A stretch of DNA of 61,747 bases, the filler included, from Ministeria vibrans ATCC 50519 (Eukaryota > Protista > Filasterea), in the NCBI GenBank assembly GCA_943704425.1. It is 6 parts of 6 records of this genome, joined end to end, with 100 filler letters (N's around TTAATTAATTAA, not from the genome) between each part and the next. Parts side by side here need not be neighbours in the genome. Positions count along the whole stretch, not along the records: positions 14,491 to 31,894 come from CALSCP010002383.1; 5 more parts are not named here. The stretch is one strand, 5' to 3'. Shown here in pieces: positions 13,581-31,894 of the stretch. The translations under genes and the position numbers were made by a program. The notes beneath the pieces were generated by a model. That model searched no databases. It was not told the DNA's origin and saw only the letters and a list, made by a program, of their open reading frames with translations. Positions within the stretch are counted from its first letter, which is position 1. Every line of letters starts with the position of its first letter.

Positions 13581-14598
13581 CATAACGCTTCCCTCGATCG
13601 GCAGACGTCTGCGAGAGTGTGCGTGCTACCGACTCGGCAATCATCTTGGCCTTGCTCTCGTACTCGGCAATCTCCTCCTCGTTCATGTCCACAAAGGGAT
13701 CCTAGGATAAAAGAGAAAAAGAGGCAATGCGTATGAGAGACGTACAGATGAAGCGTTCTCGTACTGGCCGCGATCTGAATTGGAGGGTCTGACTGACGAG
13801 GAGCGACTCATCGCGACACTCGTCACACACAAGTTCGTGTGCTTCGTTCTCGCTGAGCATCTCGCGCTTGCACTTGCCACAGCACACAAGGTAGCATATA
13901 GAACAGACGCGAGGTTTGCCGCGCAGCAGACCCGTCATTTTGCCGCTGCACACGTCGCACGGACCCGTCTTGAGACGCTCCAACTGCTGCGTCTGGTGGT
14001 CGCGGCATTCGCGACAAATGGCCTCGCCGCTCTCGCTCCAGAACATGTTCTCACGCTTACACAGCCCACAAAAGGTGACAAAGCAGTAGCGACACATGCG
14101 CGTCGCCCCCAACGCCTGGCGTTCGAGTTTACCGCATTCCGAACACCGCGGTCCAAAGTTGGCCTTGCGACGCACTCGCTGCAGCGCCTGCGTCGGCACC
14201 TCATCCTCCTCGGGGATGTCACACAGCGGCACCGGATCAAAATTGATCATCGCTACCTAAGCGCACCGACCCATGGTTCCGTTGGCGAAGGGTGAGTGAA
14301 CGACCAGAGAAGAACGTCCCTTTTTTAGTCGGCTATGCGGTTCGCTGGAACGTCGAGTGCTCGTCCAAGACCCGCATCAAGTACATGACGNNNNNNNNNN
14401 NNNNNNNNNNNNNNNNNNNNNNNNNNNNNNNNNNTTAATTAATTAANNNNNNNNNNNNNNNNNNNNNNNNNNNNNNNNNNNNNNNNNNNNGATTAGCTAT
14501 TTGACTGTGTTATTTTGCCTACCAGGTAACTGAAGGAATTTGAATTCTCGCTCTTGATCCGACTTGGTCCATTTCATTCTCAAAGAAACGTCACCCAT
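8978..14598 (-). CDS. Large (~1700 aa) protein with two N-terminal FYVE-like Cys8 zinc fingers and a long acidic/coiled-coil/Ser-Pro-rich region; 5' end interrupted by gap 14391-14490
   Basis: ORFs 13702-14250, 12403-13692 and 9143-12427 join in frame through GT-AG introns; last exon ends RRSLRGLFARRKKQ* (TGA at 8978-8980); tentative first exon MGDVSLRMKW... from 14598. Confidence 0.7.
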
Positions 14599-14749
14599 TC
14601 GACTCCAAAACCCTGCTACCCGGTGTGTACCGCAAGCAACCGGCACCTTGTCAAGTCTTGCAAAACTGTCGCACTCACTGGCTTCAGACGAATTAACAAA
14701 TTAATTATAATTATGACGTTCTTATTATTATAATTATTCACGGCAGCGA

Positions 14750-14964
14750 TCACAGCTGACCCAACTGAGCCCTCAAATCATCCAAATCGATAGCAGCACT
14801 TGACTCAACAGCAACCGAACTCGAGTCGTTCTCTTTCTCTTCCTCAACGACCACATCAGGACCATCGTAGGCAAATGAGAGACCGGCGCTGACCGTCACT
14901 GCGGCAGATGCAAGGGTTGTCGTGTCAGTCGCCTCATCGCTGTCACTGTCATCCAGACTGATTC
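14750..14964 (-). CDS. UBA5: Terminal exon of UBA5 (UFM1-interacting and UFC1-binding tail), separated from the rest of the gene
   Basis: Phase-1 acceptor completes DNEW-G-ISL; GLSFAY and C-terminal LDDLRAQLGQL* parallel the UBA5 tail (EWGIELV...GITVAY...LEDLMAKMKNM). Confidence 0.85.
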
Positions 14965-15104
14965 CTACAAAAATCATAAACGAGAGTTTGAGAGTTTGGG
15001 AGAGAAAAAGAGAGGTAGAGAGAGAGAAAAAGTTTCAAAAGAGTGAAAAAAGGGACATACGATAAAGTGCAAAGAAAAAACCACCTTCACAGATAGTGAA
15101 AAGC

Positions 15105-15138
<34 letters not shown>

Positions 15139-15192
15139 AAGAGAGATAAAGTGATAGAGAGAGATAGATAGAGAGAGAGAGATAGAGAGATA

Positions 15193-15303
<111 letters not shown>

Positions 15304-15309
15304 NNNNNN

Positions 15310-15554
15310 GTTGGTCCCGACCACCCATCCACAGGCGACACATTGAACGGCATGGCCAATGCGTTCGTGGTACAGGGAGACTACAGCCGTGCTCTTGAGT
15401 ACTATGGGCGTGCTCTGACCATTTATAAGAAGTCTGTTGGTGCCGACCACCCATCCATAGGCAACACATTGAACAACATGGCTGTTGTGTGCAAGCTGTT
15501 GGTCCCAACCACCCATCCGCAGGCGTACTAATGTTCAACATGGCACTGCTATAA
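15310..15554 (+). pseudogene. Degenerate TPR-repeat fragment (kinesin-light-chain/NPHP3-type 42-aa repeats)
   Basis: VGPDHPSTGDTLNGMA...GDYSRALEYYGRALTIYKKSVGADHPSIGNTLNNMA, then internal deletion and frameshift into VGPNHPSAG..FNMALL*. Confidence 0.7.
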
Positions 15555-16039
15555 TTAAGAAATAAAATGAAAAGGTTTACTCAGTCTATCAAGCAACAAC
15601 TTCATGTGAGCAAGAGTAGTACAATGCTTCCACCGTAGACTAAAGTAAGTGAGTGAGTGCAGACAGACTCACCAGCAACTGTTCAACAATAATAAAAATA
15701 ATAATATTAGAAGAAGAATCCAACCCATTTATTAATGACACAGTCGCCACTCAAAGTATTTGAAGAAGAAGAACACAGCCCATTTATTCATAATAATAAT
15801 ACAGTCACCAGGATCAACAGCAAAAGCACGAGTGCAATCGCTATCCAGTGAGGGAACCGCAATGATACGCCATACCCTCCAGTGCCCAGTGGGGGCTTAG
15901 GGCTCTATAAATATTATTATTAGAAGAAGAATACAACACATTTATATTATTATTATTATTATTAATAATCGATCGTATTCAATTCTCCTCGTTTTGACGT
16001 TTTCATCTAAATTCTAAAAAGTAAAATAATTTCGTTGTC

Positions 16040-18856
16040 ATGCCACACCGCACGTCAGCACCGTCACACATGATGGCGGCGCTGCTCGTTTCACTCACTC
16101 TCTGGACGTGCCAGGCAGCCGTGGACGAGAGCACGGTGCACTGGAGTGAGGCGTTGCGTCCTCCTTCAGTCACAGCAGACCTCCAGCGAAGTTCATCGCC
16201 TCCTCCTGCGCTCGTGGCGCGTCTGCCGTCACAGCGCGACGCCGACGAGATTGCACGTGCTGCTGGCGTCACCCTGTGGCACACAGCGGCTGTCGGTGGC
16301 GAGTGGTTTGCGTCGTTTGCGTCACCGCAAAGGGCTCGTCTACTGCTCGCGCATCTTCACTCGCGTCGACGGGCGTCTTCCTCGTCCTCCTCGCCGTCGT
16401 CGTTGCCCTCGGTGTGGTACGAGCCGACTCTTGAGCGGCGTCGACGAGCGCCAGTCGGTGAGTCGCCCGAACGGCGTCGTGCGACCGATTCGGCGTTCAC
16501 TATCGAGTCGCTCAAGGATCCCATGTTCAAGCACCAATGGCACCTCCACAACACGCGCAAGGACCAGGAGTTTCACGATTTGGGCATGAGCAGAGTCTGG
16601 CCCAGCGGATACACCGGCAAAGGCGTCGTGGTGACCGTTGTCGACGATGGGCTCGATCATCGCCATCCAGACTTTGACGGCACCTACTACCCCGAGGCGT
16701 CGACCGATATCAACGACCACGACGACGACCCTACGCCTCATTGCGGTCCCGGAACCGGCTGCAGCAATATACACGGCACTGCCTGCGCTGGTGAGATTGC
16801 TGCGCAGCCAAACGATGTGTGTGGCGTTGGCATAGCGCCCGGCGTGCGACTCGGCGGCATTCGCATGCTCGACGGGCGCATCACCGACTCGACCGAGGGA
16901 AGTGCCTTTAGCTTCCGCCAGGATCTTATTGACATTTACAGCATCAGTTGGGGACCCACGGACGACGGGAATCACACGGAGGGCCCCGGACGACTCGCGT
17001 ACACGGCCATTATGGATGGGATCAAGAAGGGCCGCAACGGCAAGGGGGCCATCTATGTGGTTGCAAGTGGTGATGGAGGCGACGAGGACGACTGCAACGC
17101 CGATGGCTATGCCAACTCGCCCTTCACCATTGCGACGGGCTCGATTGGTTCGTGGGAGAAGACGCCCAACTACGAGGAGCCGTGTGCGGCGCAAATTGCA
17201 ACGACATGGAGTCAGGGCGACGGCGGAGGGCCGTCCTTCTCACAGCCACACAGGAAACGGAGACGGACTGGAGAAGGGGAAGGAGAGGAGGAGGAAGACG
17301 GGAGTGAGGATGACTATGACGATGATGATGAGGAGGATGGTGATACGGATCCGAATGACGAAGACGATCAGGATCACACTGGGAGTGGGGATGATGAAGG
17401 GATGCCCGAGTCGAATCCCGATGAAATGGACGGTAGTAGCGAGCCTGATGCGGATGGGTACTATCAGGGAGGTGATTATGATCCACGAGGGATTGTGACG
17501 ACGCTGGTTGGCAATAGTTGTATGCAGCAGATGGGGGGTACGAGCGCGTCTGCGCCCATGATGGTGGGTGCCGTGGCACTCATGTTGCAGGCTCGACCTG
17601 ATTTCACCTGGCGCGATATCCAGCATTGTGTTGTGCGTGCGGCGGTGCCCGTGGAAGATGCACGACAGCGGCACTGGAAGTACTCGCCCAATGGAGTTGG
17701 CTTGCGCTTCTCGCGCTACCGCGGCTTTGGCGTGGTTCATGTGCCGCGTCTGCTGTACGTCACGGAGCGCTGGAAGCCAGTGGGGCCCCTAGAGACATGT
17801 TCAATCAAGGACGACACCACTGTGCCTGTGTCCATTGCTAAGGTGCGTCATACCTTTGCAGAGGCGCCAACGCGCATTGTGGTTGAGACGACCGGGTGTA
17901 ATGCCGAGCAAAAGTACTCGACCGAGGCGGCCCTTGAGCATGTTGGATTGCAGATGTCTTTTACCCACGGCCGTTTGGGTGACGTGCGCGTGCGTTTGCG
18001 CTCGCCCATGGGCACGTGGTCGACTTTGATGAACCGTCGTCGTCGTGCCACGTCCACCAGTGGCCTCCACGGTTGGTTCATGTTCTCCGTGGCCTTTTGG
18101 GGCGAGAACCCGCGCGGCAATTGGACTCTCGAGATTGTCGACGAGGGCTACACTACGACGGCGGGCACCCTCACCGCATGGAAGATTGTGCTGCTGCAGT
18201 CGCGCGTGGTCGCCGACCACCCTGCCTACGACTACAGCGACATGTCAATGAACCCAACACCGGCCACACTCGCCCAGCAGTACACACTGGACCCTCTCTA
18301 CGCACAGAAACATCCCGAAGTGCTGGAAAAGGTACCCGAGGACACCGACAACACAGAGGAAACGGCACCAGCGACACACCAAGCACCAATGCCCGCACAG
18401 ACTACCACAGCGACGGTAGAGGAAGAGACACCGGCAAGTACAGCAAGTGCAGCAATGGAATCAACAGCAGCAGCAGCAGAGGCAGCAGAGGCAACATCTG
18501 CAGTTGCTGTTGCAACAACAACGAGTAGCGGTGAGCCGAAATCAGGCGAGCCGCAACCCAAATGGCTCTCGATACACATGCGTCAAGTGATTGTGGGTGG
18601 TGCTGTCATTGGTAGTCTGTTTGCTGTCGTGACACTCGTGTACCTCTATGTGATGTGGCAGCGCGACCGTCGCTCCAACTACACTCTGGTGTCGGGTGGG
18701 CAGAGACGCGGTGGGCGACGAAGAGCACGTCAGCGCTTCAGCGACACGCGCAAGGAGAGTCTAGATGCCGACGATGACTTTGAGGCCATCGTGTCGTCAG
18801 GGTTTCGTGACGATGACGATGAGAGCGATGAAGATGAAGTCGTCTACAGAGAGTGA
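16040..18856 (+). CDS. Kexin/furin-family proprotein convertase (S8B catalytic domain + P domain + TM), single exon
   Basis: Signal peptide; RRRR propeptide sites; VVDDG, HGTACAG, GTSASAP catalytic triad; P domain (EHV..., WGENPRGNWTLEI); TM helix; YTLV and acidic cluster in cytosolic tail. Confidence 0.95.
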   Translation: MPHRTSAPSHMMAALLVSLTLWTCQAAVDESTVHWSEALRPPSVTADLQRSSSPPPALVARLPSQRDADEIARAAGVTLWHTAAVGGEWFASFASPQRARLLLAHLHSRRRASSSSSSPSSLPSVWYEPTLERRRRAPVGESPERRRATDSAFTIESLKDPMFKHQWHLHNTRKDQEFHDLGMSRVWPSGYTGKGVVVTVVDDGLDHRHPDFDGTYYPEASTDINDHDDDPTPHCGPGTGCSNIHGTACAGEIAAQPNDVCGVGIAPGVRLGGIRMLDGRITDSTEGSAFSFRQDLIDIYSISWGPTDDGNHTEGPGRLAYTAIMDGIKKGRNGKGAIYVVASGDGGDEDDCNADGYANSPFTIATGSIGSWEKTPNYEEPCAAQIATTWSQGDGGGPSFSQPHRKRRRTGEGEGEEEEDGSEDDYDDDDEEDGDTDPNDEDDQDHTGSGDDEGMPESNPDEMDGSSEPDADGYYQGGDYDPRGIVTTLVGNSCMQQMGGTSASAPMMVGAVALMLQARPDFTWRDIQHCVVRAAVPVEDARQRHWKYSPNGVGLRFSRYRGFGVVHVPRLLYVTERWKPVGPLETCSIKDDTTVPVSIAKVRHTFAEAPTRIVVETTGCNAEQKYSTEAALEHVGLQMSFTHGRLGDVRVRLRSPMGTWSTLMNRRRRATSTSGLHGWFMFSVAFWGENPRGNWTLEIVDEGYTTTAGTLTAWKIVLLQSRVVADHPAYDYSDMSMNPTPATLAQQYTLDPLYAQKHPEVLEKVPEDTDNTEETAPATHQAPMPAQTTTATVEEETPASTASAAMESTAAAAEAAEATSAVAVATTTSSGEPKSGEPQPKWLSIHMRQVIVGGAVIGSLFAVVTLVYLYVMWQRDRRSNYTLVSGGQRRGGRRRARQRFSDTRKESLDADDDFEAIVSSGFRDDDDESDEDEVVYRE

Positions 18857-19024
18857 TGGCGGAAAACAGAGGTCAACATTGAGAGAGAGAGAGAGAGAGA
18901 GAAAATTAATGGAAACGTTAAGAATGTACTGAACGCATCAGTTATAATAAAATGGAAAAATTAAGATTTATTTTACTGAACGCGTCAGCTTTATAATTAT
19001 GTGAGTGAGTGAGCAATGAGTGAG

Positions 19025-19874
<850 letters not shown>

Positions 19875-19877
19875 CTA

Positions 19878-19936
<59 letters not shown>

Positions 19937-19953
19937 GAGAGAGACAGACAGAC

Positions 19954-19993
<40 letters not shown>

Positions 19994-20182
19994 AGTGATA
20001 GATAGATAAAAAGTGATAGAGAGATAAAAAGTGATAGAGAGAGAGAAACAAAGTGATAGAGAGAGAGAGAGAGAGAAAAGGAGAGAGAGAGAAAGTGATA
20101 GAGAGAAACGAAGTGATAGAGAGTAGCAAGTGATAGAGAGAGATAAAAAGTGATAGAGAGATTGTGTGTGTGCGTGCCGTAC

Positions 20183-21655
20183 CCCACTCGTTGTCATCAT
20201 GCACAACCGACTGCTCATCCACACTGACCGCACTGCACTGTTGTTTGTTCTGTTCACTCTCCCGCACATTCTGCATATCACTCTGTCGCTTCACGCACTC
20301 TCCGTTGGAACACTGCGCGTTTGGACGCAGTTCCATTGTAGGGAAATAGTCCACTAATGCGTTGTATCCCAGATAGCTCGTCACTTGGCCAAACTGCAGG
20401 AGATACCTAATCATTATCATCAAAAGTGAATGAGTTAAAAAAGACGCGCAGGCAGAGAGAGAAACAAAATGATAGAGAGAGGAGGGAGAAAGAAACAAAG
20501 TGATAAAATTGAAAAATATAATCAATCATCCACGAACAGATATGTACGTCTCTCCCTCCCACACACACACACACGCTTTTTCGTACTTAAGAGTGTTCTG
20601 GACAAGCAGTCCAGCTACCACACCCATTGTGGTGGGCAGAGACGCCGCACATACCCCGTCGCGCTTCAGCGACTTCTCATTGCCCGTCACCACAACCAAT
20701 GGCGGAGCACACTACATGACACACGTATTATATCTTTCTCATTAATAATTGTGCGCTATGTACGGCAAAGCAAGCAGTGACTCCCGGTCGAATGAGCTGA
20801 ATGTGACCCGACACGGCATTTTCACTGACTCCCGACTCAATCCACACTTGGTTGAGCTCGTTGCACGCCTGGTTGATAGCCATGCGCGCCTCAAAGTTGT
20901 CGACACAGCTGAGAACGAGATTGACAGGGGATGCGCCGTCGAGTGCTCCCGTGTTGATTTGGCGGCAAAAGTGCTCGAAACGGTCGACTTTGGTAATATC
21001 GTAGTTGTGGCATTCGATGAGGACGTCTGGGTTGATTCCGGCCAGCGTCTCGCGCGCTGCTTCGACTTTGGATTGGCCACTTTGCTCGGGACGGAAGAAC
21101 AGTCTTCCAAAAACACACACATCATCAAACTGCAATCTGCGTGAGACGTATGTTCGCCATACCGGTTCATGTTGGCGAGCTCCACCTTGTCGTAATCGAA
21201 CATGATGAGCTTGCCGACGCCACAGCGGGTGAGCATTTCGCATGCGACGCTGCCGACGCCGCCGATGCCGACGACGAGCACCGTGAAGTCGCGGATGCGC
21301 TGGAAGGGGAGCCAGAGAGGGTCAGGGGCGTGCGGGCGCGCTTTGGTGCTGCGCTCTCACCTCGTAGTTGTCAACAATGCCCATTCGCTTCAGCGCCATC
21401 AGACGACTGTCAAAGAGAGCGGTAGAGCATGAAACACAAAAAACGACAGTGTGTCGCCAAGACACGCCGAGTCTCCCGCCAACGTCGCCCGGAGGACCTC
21501 CCCAGCACCTACCTGTAGGGGTTGGTATCGACGACCTCCGCGCTAAGGGTCTCAATTTTGGCGCGTGGTGCGTTGTTGTTGGCTGATGTCTTTTCATGCA
21601 GCTGCGATTCAAGCTCGCGAATGCGCTGGCGCAGTTGCTCTACTTCGGTGCTCAT
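20183..21655 (-). CDS. UBA5: UFM1-activating enzyme UBA5 (all exons except the last)
   Basis: [69 protein letters not shown], catalytic [14 protein letters not shown]. Confidence 0.97.
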
Positions 21656-21778
21656 GGGGAACGGGGAGTAGTGGGGAGGGGGGCGAGGAGATGATAGAAA
21701 AGAAATTAATGAGTTGTATTGATTATTGAATTGAGTATTGACTAGAGCTTTGTTTGCTTTTGTCTTCTCACAGCCTCA

Positions 21779-21887
21779 TGACTCATTGAGTGAGTGATGT
21801 ATTGCACCCGAGCGAGTCATGTGACTCATGAGTCATGTCACTGATCTTAGACGAAATTCAAATCTCTGCGTCTGTCTGTTTGAGTCA
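21779..21887. promoter_or_regulatory. Cluster of four TGA(C/G)TCA (AP-1/GCN4-type bZIP) sites in the divergent UBA5/EB1 promoter
   Basis: Exact matches at 21779, 21822, 21829 and 21881. Confidence 0.5.
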
Positions 21888-21955
21888 ATGCGACTGTGTG
21901 TCCGAATGGCTGATCTGACTAAAATGAAAAATCAAATCAAACTAATTGTCTAATT

Positions 21956-23868
21956 ATGGTCCAAAACGTATATCTCACCCCTAACAGCGCCCAGGAAAAC
22001 CTGTCCCGCCATGACATGTTGGCGTGGGTCAACTCTACACTCACGCTGGGTTACACGAAAATCGAAGAACTCGCGTCAGGTTTGAAAAAAAAAACAGACA
22101 CACAAATCATCCGACGCCGCTCGTTCTCGGGAACCGCGTGCCCCAGCGCGAGCTGCATACGTCGGGCGTGTACCTGCTGCGTCCCGTGGCGTGGACAGCG
22201 TGGCGTGTATGGCCCTGGAATACCATTTGGGCTTGAGACCTGTCAGAAAAAACTTTTTGAAACGTTGGGCGAAAAATTTCGCTTGTTGCGCTCGTCTGTT
22301 CGTCTGAAACCTTGCCAGGGTGCATGCGCAACACTCTGCGGCTTGCGTGCGCTTGAAGAATAACAATCTAATGAGATGACAACAAAACGTTTTTTCTCTC
22401 GTTTCTGTTTCACTTTTAGGAGCAGCTTACTGTCAATTGATTGATCTGCTGTTCAAGGGTAAGGGAAGCATGTCGTGTGTGTGTGTAACTGTGCGTAGTG
22501 TGTGAGTGAGCGAGNNNNNNNNNNNNNNNNNNNNNNNNNNNNNNNNNNNNNNNNNNNNNNNNNNNNNNNNNNNNNNNNNNNNNNNNNNNNNNNNNNNNNN
22601 NNNNNNNNNNNNNNNNNNNNNNNNNNNNNNNNNNNNNNNNNNNNNNNNNNNNNNNNNNNNNNNNNNNNNNNNNNNNNNNNNNNNNNNNNNNNNNNNNNNN
22701 NNNNNNNNNNNNNNNNNNNNNNNNNNNNNNNNNNNNNNNNNNNNNNNNNNNNNNNNNNNNNNNNNNNNNNNNNNNNNNNNNNNNNNNNNNNNNNNNNNNN
22801 NNNNNTGTGCGTAATGTGTGCTTAATGTGTGCTTAATGTGCTTAGTGTGCTTAATGTGCTTAGTGTGCTTAGTGTGCTTAGTGTGCTTAGTGTACTGTGT
22901 GTGCGCGCTTAGTGCGTGTTAGTGCTTGGTGCTTTGTTTTAAATAATTATAATATTTTTTGTATTATTGTTTGTGTGTCTGTGTCGGTGAGCGAGATTTT
23001 GTGACGCTAACCAGAGCATTATTCAGACGCAATCAAACTGAAGCAAGTCAAATTCGCCGCGAAACTTGAGCATGAATACGTGAAGAACTTCAAGTGTCTG
23101 CAGGACAGCTTCACCAAGCTGGGCGTCGACAAGGTGGTGCCCGTTGACAAGCTTGTTCGAGGAAAATTTCAGGACAATTTTGAGTTTGCGCAGTGGTTCA
23201 AAAAGGTACCCAAAACGAAGATCGAGAAGAAGAAGCACATTGATTGGTGGATAGTTCTACGATGCGAATGGCGGGCCATGCGGCAAACAAGACGATTACG
23301 ACGGAGCGGCGCGTCGCGCAGAGATGGGTGCGCCCAAAACCAAAACGGCAACAACAAGTAGTACTAGTGCGCGACCCGCTGCGAAAACGACAACCACCAG
23401 CGCCAGAGCCACTGCCACAAGAAAGGCTGTCAGCACTACTACCTCATCAACAACAGCAAAGTCAGCACCGACAAAGACAGCACCAGCCTCGAATGCGGCT
23501 GACGGGAAACCCCACAAGAACGAGCGGATTGTGACAGAGCTCAAACTGACTGTGGAGGGTCTTGAGAAGGAACGCGATTTCTATTTCCAGAAGTTGCGTG
23601 AGATTGAAATGCTCTGTCAGGTACCAAGAGAATCATGCTGGACAAATCAGGCATGGTCACTCTTATCGATTGACCGACTGTTTTCATTGACTCCCATCAA
23701 CTTTTTAGTTTTGCATTGCAACAAATTGACTAACAATTCTCTGCTTACTCTTAGGAGGAAGAAGGGACAACCCAACCGCCCGTCGTTGCCAAAATCCTTG
23801 AGATCCTTTATGCGACTGAAGAGGGGTTTGAGGCTCCTCCCTCTGACAATGATCTCGAAGAATATTAA
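21956..23868 (+). CDS. MAPRE1: Microtubule end-binding protein EB1 (RP/EB family), multi-exon
   Basis: [67 protein letters not shown]-terminal EEY*. Confidence 0.96.
22806..22930 (+). repeat. Intronic minisatellite of (GT)GTGCTTA(A/G)T units next to a gap
   Basis: About 10 imperfect 9-11 nt units in an EB1 intron. Confidence 0.8.
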
Positions 23869-24162
23869 AAAGCATCTCCCTTTTTTTTTTGCATTTTTTT
23901 TGCATGTTTTGTCTTTGACACGATATGATCGATTAACAAGTGCTGTCGGGCTTTTGAGTTGTTCTACCTTGATTTTTCATTATCAACCTGTGTGTGTATG
24001 TTTAAACCACAATAAACATAATAATAATAATAAATTAATGTCAACTAAATTTCATACAATATTATTGTTTTTTCAACTTTAAAGGCTTTCTAATATTCCT
24101 TTGTGCATAGTTATATTGCCATGGAGGTGTTTATTCTGATCGTTTGGGTCGTTGATGGGCTA

Positions 24163-24182
24163 ATTTGCATTGCGTATAAATA
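24163..24182 (+). promoter_or_regulatory. Upstream promoter of tRNA-Sec: TATAAATA at about -33, preceded by ATTTGCAT
   Basis: TATA at 24175-24182 relative to the mature 5' end at 24208; octamer-like motif at 24163-24170. Confidence 0.6.
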
Positions 24183-24207
24183 GCCCTTTTCCCCCTGAGT
24201 TCAGATT

Positions 24208-24305
24208 GGGTCCATGATTCGTTCTGGTGAACGGGGCAGTCTTCAAAAACAGAAGAAAGCTGCGTACGGGTAGCCTCGTAGGGATTCGATTTCTCCTTGG
24301 ACCCG
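24208..24305 (+). tRNA. tRNA-Sec (UCA), eukaryotic 9/4 fold, with an 11-nt intron (24247-24257)
   Basis: Acceptor GGGTCCATG/CTTGGACCC with a U-U pair and G discriminator; 6-bp D stem TCGTTC-TGGT-GAACGG; anticodon stem GCAGT/GCTGC with CT-TCA-A; variable arm TACGGG-TAGC-CTCGTA; 4-bp T stem GGGA-TTCGATT-TCTC; spliced length 87 nt. Confidence 0.92.
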
Positions 24306-24328
24306 AAATGTGTCTGTTCTGTCGCGTA

Positions 24329-24337
24329 TTTTTTTTT
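24329..24337 (+). terminator. Pol III oligo-T terminator of tRNA-Sec
   Basis: T9 run 23 nt after the discriminator base. Confidence 0.7.
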
Positions 24338-24619
24338 GTTGTCTTTTGTATTTTTTTTTTATAAAAATATAATATTGTGAACAAGTGTCAAACTGACTGA
24401 GGCGAGCGAGTGATCAAGCGAGTGAGCCACTCAATGAGTAAATGTAAACTGATTAACTGAGTGATTCAAGTGTCAACTGACTCAACTGACTCAACTGTAG
24501 AGCTGACGCGAGTCACGCGACTGGGCTGAACGCATTTGATCAACATACTGTATAACGATTATCACGTCTCAGAAGTCAAAATACATAGAAAATTGCAATT
24601 TGCAAATCACACTTGTTCC

Positions 24620-26000
24620 ATGAGCGAACCGTGGGATCGCGTCGCAGTGGCGGCCGGTCGTGCGTATGCGTCTAACATGGAGCTGATGATGTCGGAGACG
24701 GGCGAACGATGCCGGACGGATCCGCCAAGTGAGATTGGCGCGTTTTATTCGTGCGCCAACGGAAAGATTGTGTGTCGCTTTCCTACAGCCACTGGGGAGC
24801 CATGTCGGTCAAAGGGGTTTGTGGGCGAAGGTGTGCGGTATCACTTTACCATGTGCCATCCCACGAGCAAGCACCGCGTTGTCTGTGTCGTCTGCAATTC
24901 GTATGTTGGTGCNNNNNNNNNNNNNNNNNNNNNNNNNNNNNNNNNNNNNNNNNNNNNNNNNNNNNNNNNNNNNNNNNNNNNNNNNNNNNNNNNNNNNNNN
25001 NNNNNNNNNNNNNNNNNNNNNNNNNNNNNNNNNNNNNNNNNNNNNNNNNNNNNNNNNNNNNNNNNNNNNNNNNNNNNNNNNNNNNNNNNNNNNNNNNNNN
25101 NNNNNNNNNNNNNNNNNNNNNNNNNNNNNNNNNNNNNNNNNNNNNNNNNNNNNNNNNNNNNNNNNNNNNNNNNNNNNNNNNNNNNNNNNNNNNGGGAATG
25201 GCAAGGTGCGGTGTCGGTGTCGACTTGTGGACGGACGAGTGTGTACGGGAAATGGATTTGCGCCTGAGCGGGTTGGGGATCATTTCTCACACTTCCATCC
25301 TCGGAGTGTGTTCGGCGTCAACTGTGTGGTGTGCAAGGAAGATGTGGCATCAGACTGAAGCACATTGGAGCGCCACCTGCTGCAATCGCACAGTGATGTA
25401 TTCACTCGTGGCTGCGACTGGCTGAGAGTGTACTCTTCACTTGTGCGCAGTGAACTTAAGGAGCGCAATGCGAGTGAGTCTGTGATTGTGCGTGAGCTGC
25501 AGTTATTGCGTGAGAGTGAGCGAGTGCCGTCGTCGTTTGGTGGTTGACTGTCGTGTGCGCAGAAGGAGAAGGAAGTGGGGAGTGGTTGTGGTGCGGTGGA
25601 TCTCGACGCGTCATTTGAGCGACTGTCCAATGGCCAGTTCAAGTGTCGAATGGTGCGACCAGCGACGAGACAGATGTGTGACATTGGACCATTCACAAAG
25701 GGGAATGTGGGTACTCATTTCAGTCAGTGTCATGTGCTGAGTGTGTATCGCACTCGATGTGCCGTCTGCTCGCAGTCAGTGTCACAGGCGAGCAGTCTGC
25801 GTGTTCACCTGCGCCGATGCCACTCTTCTGAGTTCACGCAAACAGTGTTGGCGTCGAACTGGAAGAGTGTATACAGCTGTCATGTACGGAGTGCAATGTT
25901 GCGAGAGGGAGAGAGTGAGAGCGCGATTGAGAGAGAATTGTCGATTTTGTATGAGCATGAGAAAGTCCCTGCCTCATTTCAAAAGTGGGCAACGCAATAA
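24620..26000 (+). pseudogene. Triplicated double zinc-finger (C2H2/BED-like) reading frame with two in-frame TGA codons; pseudogene or recoded gene
   Basis: Three units G-x3-C-x(9-10)-C-x12-HF-x3-H...CxxC-x(12-13)-HL-x3-H; a single frame after the gap is broken only by TGA 25356-58 and TGA 25545-47; gap 24913-25193. Confidence 0.6.
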
Positions 26001-26743
26001 AGGAGGTTTTGACCGAATCAAGTACCGACTTTGAGACCGACCCAAAAGAAAAGAGGGAATATATAAAAATGAGTGAAGCAATGGACCGTTGCTGAGCAAC
26101 TGTAAAGGGAAGAAGCATTCTTGTCTCTGCGACGTGTCACACAATCTTAGCAGCACTTTGGCCGTCGCCCCTGTGCGTCCCCTTCAAACTGCACTACACA
26201 TGATGGCACCCATGTCCCAATAGTTGCTCTTTCGTGCGTTGAATGTGGCGTTGAACGAAGTTGAACTTCCAGCATTTTATTAGAGCCGTTTCTCCCTCTC
26301 AGTGTCAGTCTCAGTGTCAGTGTCAGTGTCAGCGTCAGTCTCAGTCTCAAAGTGTGTTGTTCGTTGCTTGAACGTGTGGGTGAAAGAGGCAACACTCTGT
26401 CGCTCCAGTGGTAACAGTTTTGCTCAGAGGGAAGAAATAAGAAATCAGAAGCAATAGAGTAACATAATGTGAACATAATGCTTCCACCATAGACGAACCC
26501 CCCAAAGATGAAGCGCCCGTAGGTGATAACTCACTGATACGCTCTCACAGTAAGTGTACGAAGACTTCTTATCATATTTTCTGTAATATTTGGATTATTC
26601 AAGAGAGATAAACTAAAATCTTGTCATCAGCAGAGGTTGTCACCGAGAGATAAGTCAGACAAGTGATAACAAAAATCTATCCCCCAAAATAGAATCATTT
26701 TGTTCGGTCAGCCTCGCTCTCGCCGCTGACCCTGACGTATCGC

Positions 26744-28850
26744 ATGCGAGGGCACCCTGCACCGTTCCTGGTGCTCCTTGCGGTCTCCCTTGCGCCGTTG
26801 GCCGTCGCAGATCTGTTTCCGTCTCGACATCTTCTGGCAAGCGCACCGTCGGCCTCCTCTCATGGCAACGGCACCGACGATCACCACGCCGCGCTTCCCT
26901 ATGGAATCCTGAGTCTCGTCAATCATCTTGGTGCGACATTGAGAAATCCAATTTTGCCCTTCGCACACTCTCTCTCATTTGGCTCTCTCTCGCCCTCTCC
27001 CGCCCTCTCCTTCGTTCCATTTCTTATCCATCTCCTTCAATTGACCCACTCGTACCCTCTCCTATGCTCTTTCTCTTGTTGTCTCGTCCAAAAAAATCCA
27101 CAAGAGTCATAAAATTTTTTTCTTCTTCTTTTCTTTTGTTAGATTCATCGGACGCTCCTCTGCTTATTACCCTCATTCTGGTGCTGATTGCCATCACCTT
27201 TCTATGGGAGACGATAGTAGAGCTGCTTTTCATGGCGCTGCGGCGGCAGAAGCACCTGCAAATGATGGTACAGAAGCTGTTCCGTGAGCTGACGCTCGTT
27301 GGTGTGCTGTCGCTGGCTCTGCTGCCGCTGTCGACGTCCATTGACGAGAGCCAGAAGCACGTCTTTGAGATTGTGCACATCTCGCTCTTTGGCCTCACTG
27401 TCCTCTTCCTCTTCACCATGATCTTCATTGCCGTCAGCTCCATTACCATCTTCCGTCGCTGGGAGCGCTTTGAGCGAGGCAACGACGCACACGTCGACCA
27501 GAAGCGACTCATGCTCACCGACTACGAGACACGTCTCAGTCGTTGGCGCCTGCTTTTTCACCCTCGCTATCAATTCGCCAGACTTGGGGTGCGCATGCAC
27601 GCCGACTACCGCACCATCCGCGACCATTTTGTCGATCAGCATCAGTTGACGGGCCACTTTCGCTTTGATGTCTACCTCAAACGCTGCATGAAGCTCATCT
27701 TTGCCGATCTGGCACAGGTTCACTGGAGCGCTCTTGCCCTTGTGCTCATTCTCCACATTTGCTTTTGGCTGCCCTTCTCGCTGCTCACCGAAGATTCGGG
27801 CGTGCCCTTCATCATAGAGGGCATCATTGTGTGTGTGCTGTCCACCATTGTCTGGTGGAAGTCACACGTCATCCTGCGCAAACTGCGTGGCAACGTCAAC
27901 ATTATGCGCGACAGTTCCGCTCTGGCGCACGCCAAGCAGCTGCGTGAGGTTGCCGAACTGCGTGCCGCCTCGGTAACCGATCACTCGACGCACGAGACGG
28001 AGTTTGAGGCCAAGCTGGTCGCACTGCCCCCAACCGACGATGCTTCCGGCACGCTTGCCGACGCCGCTTCCTTGTCCTCTCTTAATCGTGTTGACTCGCT
28101 CGAGACACAGTCCATGCGTGTGCGTGCCGCAGCAGCTCTCCAGCGCTACGGAGCCACTATTATGAACCTGGGCTCGCGCAATCGCTCCCACACTCGTCTG
28201 GCTCTCGATGCCTCCGCATCCGATGTGCCGTCTCTTGCAAGCGAGAACCAGCCACTTGTATCGAAAGCCAGCAGCAACTTTGGCTCACAAGCCATCGAAA
28301 TGGACAATCTCGCGTTGACGACAACCACTACGACCACTTCTGCGCCCATGACCACCCCACCGCCGTCTCGTGAGGCGTCCACCGCCGCTGACACTCCGAT
28401 TTTTATTAGCCCCATGGTCGTTACCTCTGACCCAAATATTGCTGCCGAAGCGACACGCGTGCTCTCTGCCGCCACATCACCGCAGAGCAGCACTGCCACA
28501 TCGCCCATTGCATCCACCTCTGCCGTGACCCCTTCGGCGCTACCTCCCACACTCGCTCCACTGCCCTCTGTGCCATCGACTGCCCCGCCTGCCATCCTGG
28601 CAATTCCACCCAACATGGCTGCGCGTCTGTTGGCCGCTGACAACCACCACTTGCGTTCACCGTCGCCCATGGGTACGCGCGTGGGCAGCGGCACCAGCCT
28701 CAATGCCGCCGATGGTCCTCTTGCGGCCGCCGTGCTGAGACTCAAGGAGCAACAGCGTGTTCCCTCCGTTGCCGACGTGGCTGCGACGTTGCTGCTGCGC
28801 CCTGCTTGCTCCATGTTTATTGTGGGGGATTCGAGTGAGGAGAATGACGA

Positions 28851-28886
<36 letters not shown>

Positions 28887-31537
28887 AGAGGAGGACGGGG
28901 AGGATGGCGAGCAAGGACAATGGGGAGAAGGGCAGAGGGGCGAAGGGGCGAAAGGGACGCTTGTGGGTGCGGGTGTGGGATCATCGCCGGTACGCACACC
29001 TATGTCAAGCCGACCCGCCTCGGGACTGATGTTAACCGATCTGGTGACGGGCACGAGTGAGAGTGCGCGGCGCAAGCGTCGGAAAATGATAAAACAGAAG
29101 AAGAAGATGCGTGCGCTCGCGGACGGTGGCTACGACGACAGTGCAGTGCCGGGACTGTCGGACGACACTGTCTCGTCGGGACTGGACACGCCCACGGACA
29201 GTAGCAGTGAGTCGGGGAGTAGTCAGAGTGGACTCAGTGGCGTGGCTAGTGACGACGAGGCGTCGCTGACCAACTCAGAGTCCGACTCGTCCTTCACCGA
29301 GAGTTCCTACGAGAGTGTCGACGAGGATGCCATTGCTCGAGTGCAGTCTCTACTCACCGGCTCGGGTTACGACGAGTCGTCCGAGAGTGGCGACGACGGT
29401 CTCGACTTGCCCACAGTAGGCATAAGTGTGGCGCGGCGCACCAAAGGCCGCGCACGTCGACACCACGGGCATGGACACGGACGCGGTCACTTGCGGTCAC
29501 GTCTTACTCCACACGCTCTGCACCAGCAGCAGCAACAGCAGCAACAACAACAACAACAACAACAGCAACAACCACAACAGCAACAACGACAGCAACAACA
29601 GCAGCAACAGCTGAGTCAAACCGAGTTGCACTCAACATTGCCCTCTCATCCAGGACTTTCCGCCCCCAACAGTCAATCCAAAGTGCTGCGACCCTCTCCA
29701 TTGCGCCAGTCCGTCTCACCACGACATAACAGTGACAGTGATGAGACTGCGACGTCTCCCATGCCGCCCACGAGTGGAGCTGGCAGTGGGGGCAGTGGCC
29801 ACGAACTGAGTCTTCTGGATCGTCGACGCACCAACGCTGCACCGCTCTCGGTGACTGCCATTGCTCGTCAGCGGATGATGCATCGTCCCGACTCGCTCAA
29901 TGCCTTGCCCGAAGATGCTATGGCGTCGATAACGGGGGTTCCCTCGGACCTCACATTGCGCATTCCTCAGCGAAGCGAGCTCCCCAACAACAACAACATC
30001 CACACCAACGACAATCACGACCAGAATGATTCCAATTCAGCTCGCACGACACCCACCACTACACCAGCGCCAATTATGGAGCAGCAACCGCGTCGACGGG
30101 CTGAAATGCCTCCGCCCCCTCGACGCCGTCGACATGCAGGGCAACGCAAGCGCTACATGCCTCCCACACGTCCTCTCTCAGACGCCAGTGTGCACAGTCT
30201 CAACACGGGCAACTCGGTGCCTGCCACTGCGCCCGCCTACGCCCCAGGTAGTCGCGTTGTGTCGTTTGTCGATCCTCCCAACATGGGCTCCGTGGCGTCT
30301 TCGGCAGGCACAGTGCAGTCGACAGTGCCTCTTATGTCAACAACAACAACGGCAGCAACAGATACAACAGCAGCTGCGTCTGCATCTGGGCTGAGCACGG
30401 CGAACAATGACATAGTTCGCACAGCGAGTGTCGAGGGGAATATGCGTCGTCGCTTCAGTGGTCTCAATTTGCGCAATCTGCTACTTGGACGCAACCGCAG
30501 CAGCAATGCCGTGCCTAATCTGGCCCAGGTACCCCAGACGGCGCCCGTTCTCTCCCTCCCGCACGGTGGCGGCGGCTCCCGAGGCGACGTGACAGTCATC
30601 GACATGCCGTCACAACCGGGTGTGCAGGAGCTGCTTCAGAATCCCGAAGTGCGCCCACTCGTCACTCACCATCATCACCATCACCATCACCACCATCACG
30701 CCACGCACCATGTGCTGGGCGACGTCAATGCCGACCACGAGGTGGGCGAGGGTGACATTTGCCTTGAGGGCTGTCTCATGCCGCTGATCAAGGGTCGTTT
30801 CATTGAGCATATGAAGCACGAGTTTCTGCCCAATACGGAGCACGAGAAGATGTTTTGGTTTGGCAATGCGCGTCTGCTGCAGTACATCATCCAGGTGATG
30901 GTGCTCATGCTCGCTTTCTACTTTGCCATTGTGCTTGCAGCGTGTGCCCGTGCCGTTCTCGTTGCCGTTGCTTACATCCCCTTTGCCTTCATTTTCTGCT
31001 TTGTTGTCATTCTCTTTTTGCTGCCCGCCACAATCTACAACTTTTCCGTCATTGTCAACGTTGGCGAGTTCTCAACTCTCAACATCATTCGTGAAGTGGT
31101 CAACAAGTACCATCGCCATCACCACGGACACCACCATGGACACGGACACGGGTAAGCCAAAATATGAATTGTCACAGTATTCTCAAGTGGGAACACTGCA
31201 ATCTTATTGCCACATTTTAACTATACTTTTTATGTCATGATACTTCCTTTTTTTTTTTTTTTTTTTTTTTTTCAGGCACGGCCATGGACATGGACACGGT
31301 CACGGCCATGGACACGGAAAACGCGCGCGAAAGCGCAAGGAGAAGGACAACAAGCGCAGCAATCACGAGGGTCTCACAGCGGACCAGCGAAATGGATCGA
31401 TTGCCAGCGGGCTCAGCGACGGTCGACGCACACCCGGCAAAGGTACGGGACGACGGGGCAGCATGGTGTCGCTGGACATACAACCCTCCCGTCAGACGTC
31501 GACGGCGGAGTTGATTGTGAAGGAGAGCGTTCTGTAG
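26744..31537 (+). CDS. MLO-like multi-pass membrane protein with a very large low-complexity loop, 3 exons
   Basis: Signal-peptide exon from 26744; QKLFRELTLVGVLSL, FRFDVYLKRCM..IFADLAQVHW and FWFGNARLL..IIQ echo conserved MLO blocks; last exon ends ...KESVL*. Confidence 0.72.
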
Positions 31538-31662
31538 TATACAATTTATTATTATTAAAAGTTCTATTAACTTTTCGGGTTTATAATATTATTATTGTTG
31601 TAAAGAATTATTTCGAGGAATCATTCAGGAAAGAAAAAATAAAACAACATCGTCATCTTCAT

Positions 31663-31894
<232 letters not shown>

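Follow-up and report, generated by a model that had tools for sequence, protein, structure and literature searches.

A selenocysteine tRNA gene with a predicted 11-nt intron in the filasterean Ministeria vibrans

Introduction

The tRNA that carries selenocysteine (tRNA-Sec) is normally encoded by a single, intronless gene and has an unusual 9/4 shape. Where a tRNA gene does contain an intron, the splicing endonuclease is thought to place its cuts by reference to the mature tRNA body. The closest described system to the one studied here is found in Daphnia pulex. The Secmarker survey (Santesmasses, Mariotti and Guigo), which scanned about 10,000 genomes, reported two tRNA-Sec genes in this species, both interrupted at the site of the insert described below, by introns of 25 and 16 nt (PMC5330540). 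The sole earlier case is given there as the tRNA-Sec of Lokiarchaeota, which has an intron in the T arm (PMC4989117, cited in PMC5330540). The Lokiarchaeota/Asgard gene also requires splicing, but its intron is of archaeal type and lies in the T arm, its D stem has 7 bp, and it belongs to another domain of life (PMC4989117). Our full-text literature searches, in which journal coverage was incomplete, found no intron-bearing tRNA-Sec in a eukaryote beyond Daphnia.

Two further systems serve as references for the intron itself. In the cryo-EM structure of the human splicing endonuclease (TSEN) with pre-tRNA-Arg, a 4-bp anticodon–intron (A-I) helix starts at C32:G and stacks on the anticodon stem, and three flipped-out bases form the bulge at the 3' splice site (PMC10539383). 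T. brucei tRNA-Tyr has a short intron, of 11 nt, that is spliced out (PMC4931112).

Here we analyse a tRNA-Sec gene from Ministeria vibrans. The window, by which we mean the whole stretch of DNA under analysis (61,747 nt, filler included), contains a 17.4-kb piece of this genome (positions 14,491 to 31,894, CALSCP010002383.1) in which the gene lies. An earlier note on this DNA had mentioned only isolated exceptions to the intronless rule, which is right in view of Daphnia and Lokiarchaeota; it overstated the novelty of the locus, since D. pulex provides a precedent (PMC5330540). Its point that TSEN has to deal with a 9/4 fold is a fair one that already held for Daphnia. The arrangement is rare, not new in kind, and in the literature searched it is reported among eukaryotes for Daphnia only.

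Gene identification and structure

Using cmscan, we found that the Rfam tRNA-Sec family (RF01852) matches positions 24208–24304 on the plus strand over its full length (model positions 1–91/91), with a score of 55.3 bits and an E-value of 5e-09; the gathering score of this family is 47 bits. The alignment is free of gaps except in the anticodon loop, where the locus has 12 nt and the model one, and this is the sole large deviation. Within the 17.4-kb piece, an Rfam scan with E-values up to 1 returned no other RNA-family match and no SECIS element.

Taken together, Rfam RF01852, ARAGORN under relaxed settings and folding delimit an intron-containing gene at 24208–24305 (+). The 5' exon (24208–24246, +) corresponds to tRNA-Sec positions 1–37 and comprises the 5' strand of the acceptor stem, the D arm, the 5' strand of the anticodon stem and the bases C32 U33 U34 C35 A36 A37, according to the RF01852 alignment, the relaxed ARAGORN cloverleaf and the minimum-energy fold. 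The 3' exon (24258–24305, +) runs from A38 through the 3' strand of the anticodon stem, the variable arm, the T arm and the 3' strand of the acceptor stem to the discriminator base G73 at 24305, as supported by Rfam, ARAGORN, the fold and pair counts. Both Rfam and ARAGORN identify the anticodon as UCA (24243–24245, +), which decodes UGA.

Read from the sequence, the acceptor stem GGGUCCAUG/CUUGGACCC forms nine pairs, eight of them standard and the eighth in order a U.U, and a two-base linker (AU) connects it to a D stem of six pairs (UCGUUC/GAACGG) closed by the 4-nt loop UGGU. The anticodon stem (GGCAGU/GCUGCG) has six pairs, the top one being a G.G mismatch, and after removal of the intron its loop reads CUUCAAA (24241–24246 plus A24258). 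The variable arm (ACGGG/CUCGU, loop UAGC) has 5–6 bp, and all four pairs of the T stem form in the T arm GGGA-UUCGAUU-UCUC. Folding and pair counts both give the 9/4 arrangement (9-bp acceptor stem, 4-bp T stem). A long variable arm and G73 are identity features for seryl-tRNA synthetase. All the hallmarks of tRNA-Sec that had been listed for this locus from a first reading are therefore present, both in the sequence and in the full-length Rfam match, and we confirm that 24208–24305 is a real eukaryote-type tRNA-Sec gene.

Intronless eukaryotic tRNA-Sec (RF01852, for example the human gene) has the same 9-bp acceptor stem with its U.U, the same 6-bp D stem and UGGU loop, the anticodon loop CUUCAAA, the UAGC variable arm, the 4-bp T stem, G73 and an upstream TATA element. 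The window gene differs from it in having an intron, in the G.G that tops the anticodon stem, and in carrying A53-U61 in place of G53-C61.

The insert and the predicted precursor fold

The 11-nt insert, AAACAGAAGAA, occupies 24247–24257 (+), between positions 37 and 38, as judged from the Rfam alignment, relaxed ARAGORN and the fold of the 87-nt product. Its boundaries can slide within the flanking runs of A, giving four placements that yield the same product, and ARAGORN prints another of them; the 37/38 placement is the one used here, and with it each cut lies two bases beyond the helix described below, one on each strand. When 24247–24257 is removed, the remaining 87 nt fold into a clean 9/4 cloverleaf (-34 kcal/mol). 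The position of the insert and the length of the product put forward in the earlier note are thus borne out, the position being one of four equivalents.

In minimum-energy folds, the intron motif GAAG (24252–24255, +) pairs with C32–C35 (24241–24244) to form a 4-bp anticodon–intron helix. This CUUC/GAAG helix extends the anticodon stem and is present in the folds of both the 98-nt precursor and the 32-nt anticodon arm (z-scores of -3.0 and -2.7). It begins with C32:G(-3), that is C24241:G24255, in minimum-energy and centroid folds. Both the GAAG/CUUC pairing and the contact of C32 with the antepenultimate G of the intron had been proposed before any folding, and the minimum-energy folds of precursor and anticodon arm recover them. 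On the 3' side, the folds place A24256, A24257 and A24258 in a bulge of 3 nt that contains the 3' splice site. At its far end the helix carries a 7-nt loop made of A36, A37 and five intron bases, within which the 5' splice site falls. The chance of finding GAAG at positions -6 to -3 of a random intron is about 0.3% given the local base composition, or 0.7–1.6% if G-U pairs are allowed.

This geometry departs from the strict archaeal bulge-helix-bulge motif, in which a 4-bp helix separates two 3-nt bulges and outer helices close both ends. Here the helix and the 3' bulge are present, and the 5' site falls within a hairpin loop of 7 nt that lacks an outer helix. Such a relaxed form of the motif is typical of eukaryotic pre-tRNAs. 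Human pre-tRNA-Arg(UCU) shares with the window gene the 37/38 site, the 4-bp helix starting at C32:G and the 3-nt bulge on the 3' side (PMC10539383), and the T. brucei tRNA-Tyr gene shows the same length, 11 nt, in a working intron (PMC4931112). The gene call and the reading of the insert, by its site and predicted shape, as a canonical nuclear TSEN-type tRNA intron are well supported by these structures, by the flanking signals and by comparison with the Daphnia-type genes. The difference lies in the tRNA body, for canonical TSEN/Sen substrates are 7/5 tRNAs, whereas the window gene has a 9/4 body with D and anticodon stems of 6 bp each.

The same folds bear on whether the insert might be retained. 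The RNA would then have to function with 18 nt in its anticodon loop, or in a role other than that of a tRNA. In the fold of the unspliced form, the CUUC/GAAG helix ties up the anticodon, and the precursor has the shape of a splicing substrate. Decoding tRNAs with so large an anticodon loop are not known, our analysis yielded no positive support for retention, and we consider it extremely improbable.

Comparison with Daphnia and metagenomic genes

Metagenomes were scanned with a pattern that combined the features common to the window gene and the human gene with an insert of at least about 9 nt. The scan returned three loci, one of them an intronless gene (a chance match) and the other two Daphnia-like; no relative of the window gene was among these matches. 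The two Daphnia-like loci, L002:469–570 (minus strand, JACCDP011510543.1) and L003:774–882 (plus strand, JACCDP011475229.1), are tRNA-Sec genes whose introns measure 15 and 22 nt. In mature form the two are identical except for a single compensated pair in the T stem. The published D. pulex pair has this signature, with intron lengths of 25 and 16 nt, and the two loci may come from a cladoceran, possibly another species. Both introns end in GAAGUU, which gives a helix and a bulge as in the window gene. A TATA element is found at -33 in L003 and at -32 in L002, and TTTT runs lie 13–21 nt downstream of the two genes.

The window gene and the Daphnia-type genes have in common a eukaryotic 9/4 tRNA-Sec with anticodon UCA, G73 and an intron that follows the anticodon after one base. 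With L002 and L003 it also shares the loop sequence CUUCAA, an intron ending in GAAG plus 2 nt, the helix with its bulge, and a TATA element at about -33. The differences are equally clear: Daphnia-type introns are 15–25 nt long and that of the window gene 11 nt, the mature sequence of the window gene differs at many paired positions, and Daphnia has two copies whereas one copy is present within the 17.4-kb piece. We conclude that the window gene is a further example of the arrangement, apparently independent of Daphnia. At 11 nt, its intron is the shortest so far in a tRNA-Sec, with the same length as the T. brucei tRNA-Tyr intron.

The chance match of the scan, L001:1577–2261 (Ga0307380_10152253), is an intronless eukaryote-type tRNA-Sec of 76 bits with an RNase MRP-like match (1691–1950, 40 bits, cut-off 50) only about 28 nt upstream of its start. 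A tRNA-Leu(CAA) is also near, and the locus resembles a compact, same-strand group of small-RNA genes.

Detection by tRNA finders and evidence for structural selection

With default settings, ARAGORN made no call at the locus, whether the intron option was on or off, and it also rejected the intron-free 87-nt form. When introns were allowed and the threshold was relaxed (-ps90), it reported a tRNA-SeC(tca) of 87 nt with an 11-nt intron, in a run that also gave evident false positives with very long 'introns'. As controls, the intronless metagenomic tRNA-Sec was accepted, and so were the two Daphnia-like genes with introns allowed. The Rfam scores are 55 bits for the window gene, 61–63 bits for the Daphnia-like genes and 76 bits for the intronless gene; Infernal/Rfam scoring was applied to the intron-containing form, and exons were joined in silico for folding and ARAGORN alone. 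The lower score of the window gene is likely due to its G.G mismatch and its A53-U61 pair. This last pair, next to the T loop, is G-C in the three comparison genes, and G53-C61 is near-universal among tRNAs. The concern that standard annotation can miss this gene is justified for default ARAGORN, which finds nothing, although Infernal/Rfam does detect it. Because default ARAGORN misses the gene, Sec use in this organism could be under-called.

A low score may also be the mark of decay. The locus could be a tRNA-Sec pseudogene or a silent duplicate whose anticodon loop received an 11-nt insertion by chance, with a working gene elsewhere in the genome. Such an origin would account for an Rfam score below those of the other three tRNA-Sec genes, for the rejection of even the insert-free form by default ARAGORN, and for the anticodon-stem G.G and the non-consensus A53-U61; moreover, pseudogenes of tRNA-Sec do occur, as in hominids (PMC5330540). 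We nevertheless read the low score and the ARAGORN rejection as those of a lower-scoring but intact member of the family. Against decay, U33, the anticodon UCA, A37, A38, the T loop UUCGAUU, G73 and the conserved U.U are all present, and all five stems persist, mostly because both partners of a pair have changed relative to other lineages.

To describe this conservation, we aligned the window gene with the three metagenomic tRNA-Sec genes, a small sample (n = 4, two of them near-identical). On the 9/4 structure, standard pairs occupy 96% of the cells of this four-gene alignment, and 17 of the 34 pairs show two-sided changes. None of 500 shuffles (0/500), and no slid register, came near the observed pairing. 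The unpaired cells are confined to the U.U common to all four genes and the one G.G of the window gene. The D stem is 100% paired across the alignment, with four of its pairs changed on both sides, and A53-U61 against G-C is itself a two-sided change in which pairing is kept. This pattern fits a gene under structural selection and argues against a decayed pseudogene.

Flanking signals and the proposed processing pathway

A TATA box-like element, TATAAATA, lies at 24175–24182 (+), spanning -33 to -26 relative to the tRNA start, and a run of ten T residues (T10), a likely Pol III terminator, lies at 24329–24338 (+). Both were recognized by reading the sequence, and their roles as promoter and terminator are putative. 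The T10 run starts 24 nt after G73, leaving a 3' trailer of 23 nt (24306–24328). Vertebrate tRNA-Sec genes have upstream U6-like Pol III promoters (PMC2943599). The layout expected of a eukaryotic tRNA-Sec gene comprises a TATA element and a PSE upstream and an oligo-T terminator downstream. A TATA box and a T run placed as an active gene requires speak against a pseudogene, and so does the form of the insert. A random insertion would have had to enter one of about 4 equivalent sites among 87 and to carry GAAG in register (0.3–1.6%), which gives a joint chance of about 1e-4 to 1e-3. On this evidence a pseudogene or silent duplicate seems quite unlikely to us, and the locus is likely to be a functional nuclear 9/4 tRNA-Sec(UCA) gene with a TSEN-type 11-nt intron at 37/38.

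If the gene is functional, the following pathway can be proposed. Pol III probably transcribes it from the upstream TATA-containing promoter and terminates at T10. In the precursor, C32–C35 would pair with the intron GAAG as a 4-bp extension of the anticodon stem. A 3-nt bulge (A, A and A38) would hold the 3' splice site, and the 5' site would lie in the 7-nt loop, two bases past the helix. Cleavage by TSEN/Sen at the two sites, followed by joining of the halves by a tRNA ligase, would yield an 87-nt tRNA (plus CCA) that reads CUUCAAAGCUGC across the spliced region, with the anticodon loop CUUCAAA found in the three aligned tRNA-Sec genes. The spliced tRNA would finally be used in Sec insertion, a role that involves serylation, conversion by PSTK and SEPSECS, and delivery by EEFSEC.

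Copy number and dependence on splicing

Even with a functional and spliced gene at this locus, another copy of tRNA-Sec in the genome could be intronless, and Sec decoding would then be independent of splicing. This alternative contests the inferred dependence on splicing and leaves the gene call untouched. Several eukaryotes, including Daphnia, have multiple apparently functional tRNA-Sec copies (Secmarker, PMC5330540), and the genome inspected here amounts to 17.4 kb, within which no second copy of either tRNA half was found. On the other hand, most Sec-using eukaryotes have a single tRNA-Sec gene (PMC5330540, PMC13578239), and in Daphnia, where there are two, both bear introns. We think an intronless second copy somewhat unlikely.

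A functional, spliced tRNA-Sec gene has consequences that depend on its being the sole copy. If it is, and if the genome encodes the Sec machinery, an intron in that gene would make the whole selenoproteome dependent on tRNA splicing. In its fullest form, our interpretation is that M. vibrans represents a second lineage, unrelated to Daphnia, whose sole tRNA-Sec is split by the shortest (11-nt) tRNA-Sec intron, such that all selenoprotein synthesis would depend on a splicing endonuclease and a ligase acting on a 9/4 substrate; the intron would have been gained independently, and the GAAG-NN end would be convergent. We put forward this composite interpretation tentatively, as a proposition that falls a little short of being evenly balanced.

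Such a gene would constitute a natural test of how the endonuclease deals with a tRNA whose acceptor/T and D/anticodon helix lengths differ from the usual ones. The distance from the body to the anticodon need not differ much, because mature tRNA-Sec must presumably fit the ribosome like other tRNAs. A second case beyond Daphnia, here with a near-minimal intron, would mean that such genes are not a one-off, and a gene with so short an intron would offer a compact substrate for endonuclease experiments.

Genomic neighbourhood

The tRNA-Sec gene is located about 340 bp downstream of the stop codon (23866–23868) of an EB1/MAPRE-like gene and upstream of ORFs with weak zinc-finger similarity. These ORFs form three tandem segments at 24536–26000 (+) with a common Cys/His pattern (C..C ... 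H....H ... C..C). Their matches to C2H2/Di19 zinc fingers are sub-threshold only, and an assembly gap at 24913–25193 breaks the array. Further downstream, an uninterrupted ORF of 1363 aa (27064–31155, +) has hydrophobic N- and C-terminal regions and no Pfam match, and its middle is a long low-complexity stretch with runs of Q, H, D, T and S.

On the other side, an intronless gene at 16040–18856 (+) encodes a furin/kexin-like proprotein convertase of 938 aa with Peptidase_S8 and P domains. This protein is unusually divergent: nothing in the database exceeds 53% identity to it, and a quick tree puts it, as a very long branch, beyond the animal PC1/PC2/furin groups and next to eukaryotic transcriptome sequences. 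The two long ORFs of the piece have no exact match in the protein database.

The EB1 and UBA5 exons were examined one by one; a UBA5 exon in the piece is about 70% identical to human UBA5. Fungi are not known to have this system, which argues against a fungal source, and no part of the piece appears to be human DNA. The GT-AG introns of the piece are short, as in the UBA5 gene, where one measures 58 nt. From 19222 to 20300, in the interval separating the convertase and UBA5 genes, long CT-rich and GACA-type microsatellites give rise to spurious long ORFs on both strands.
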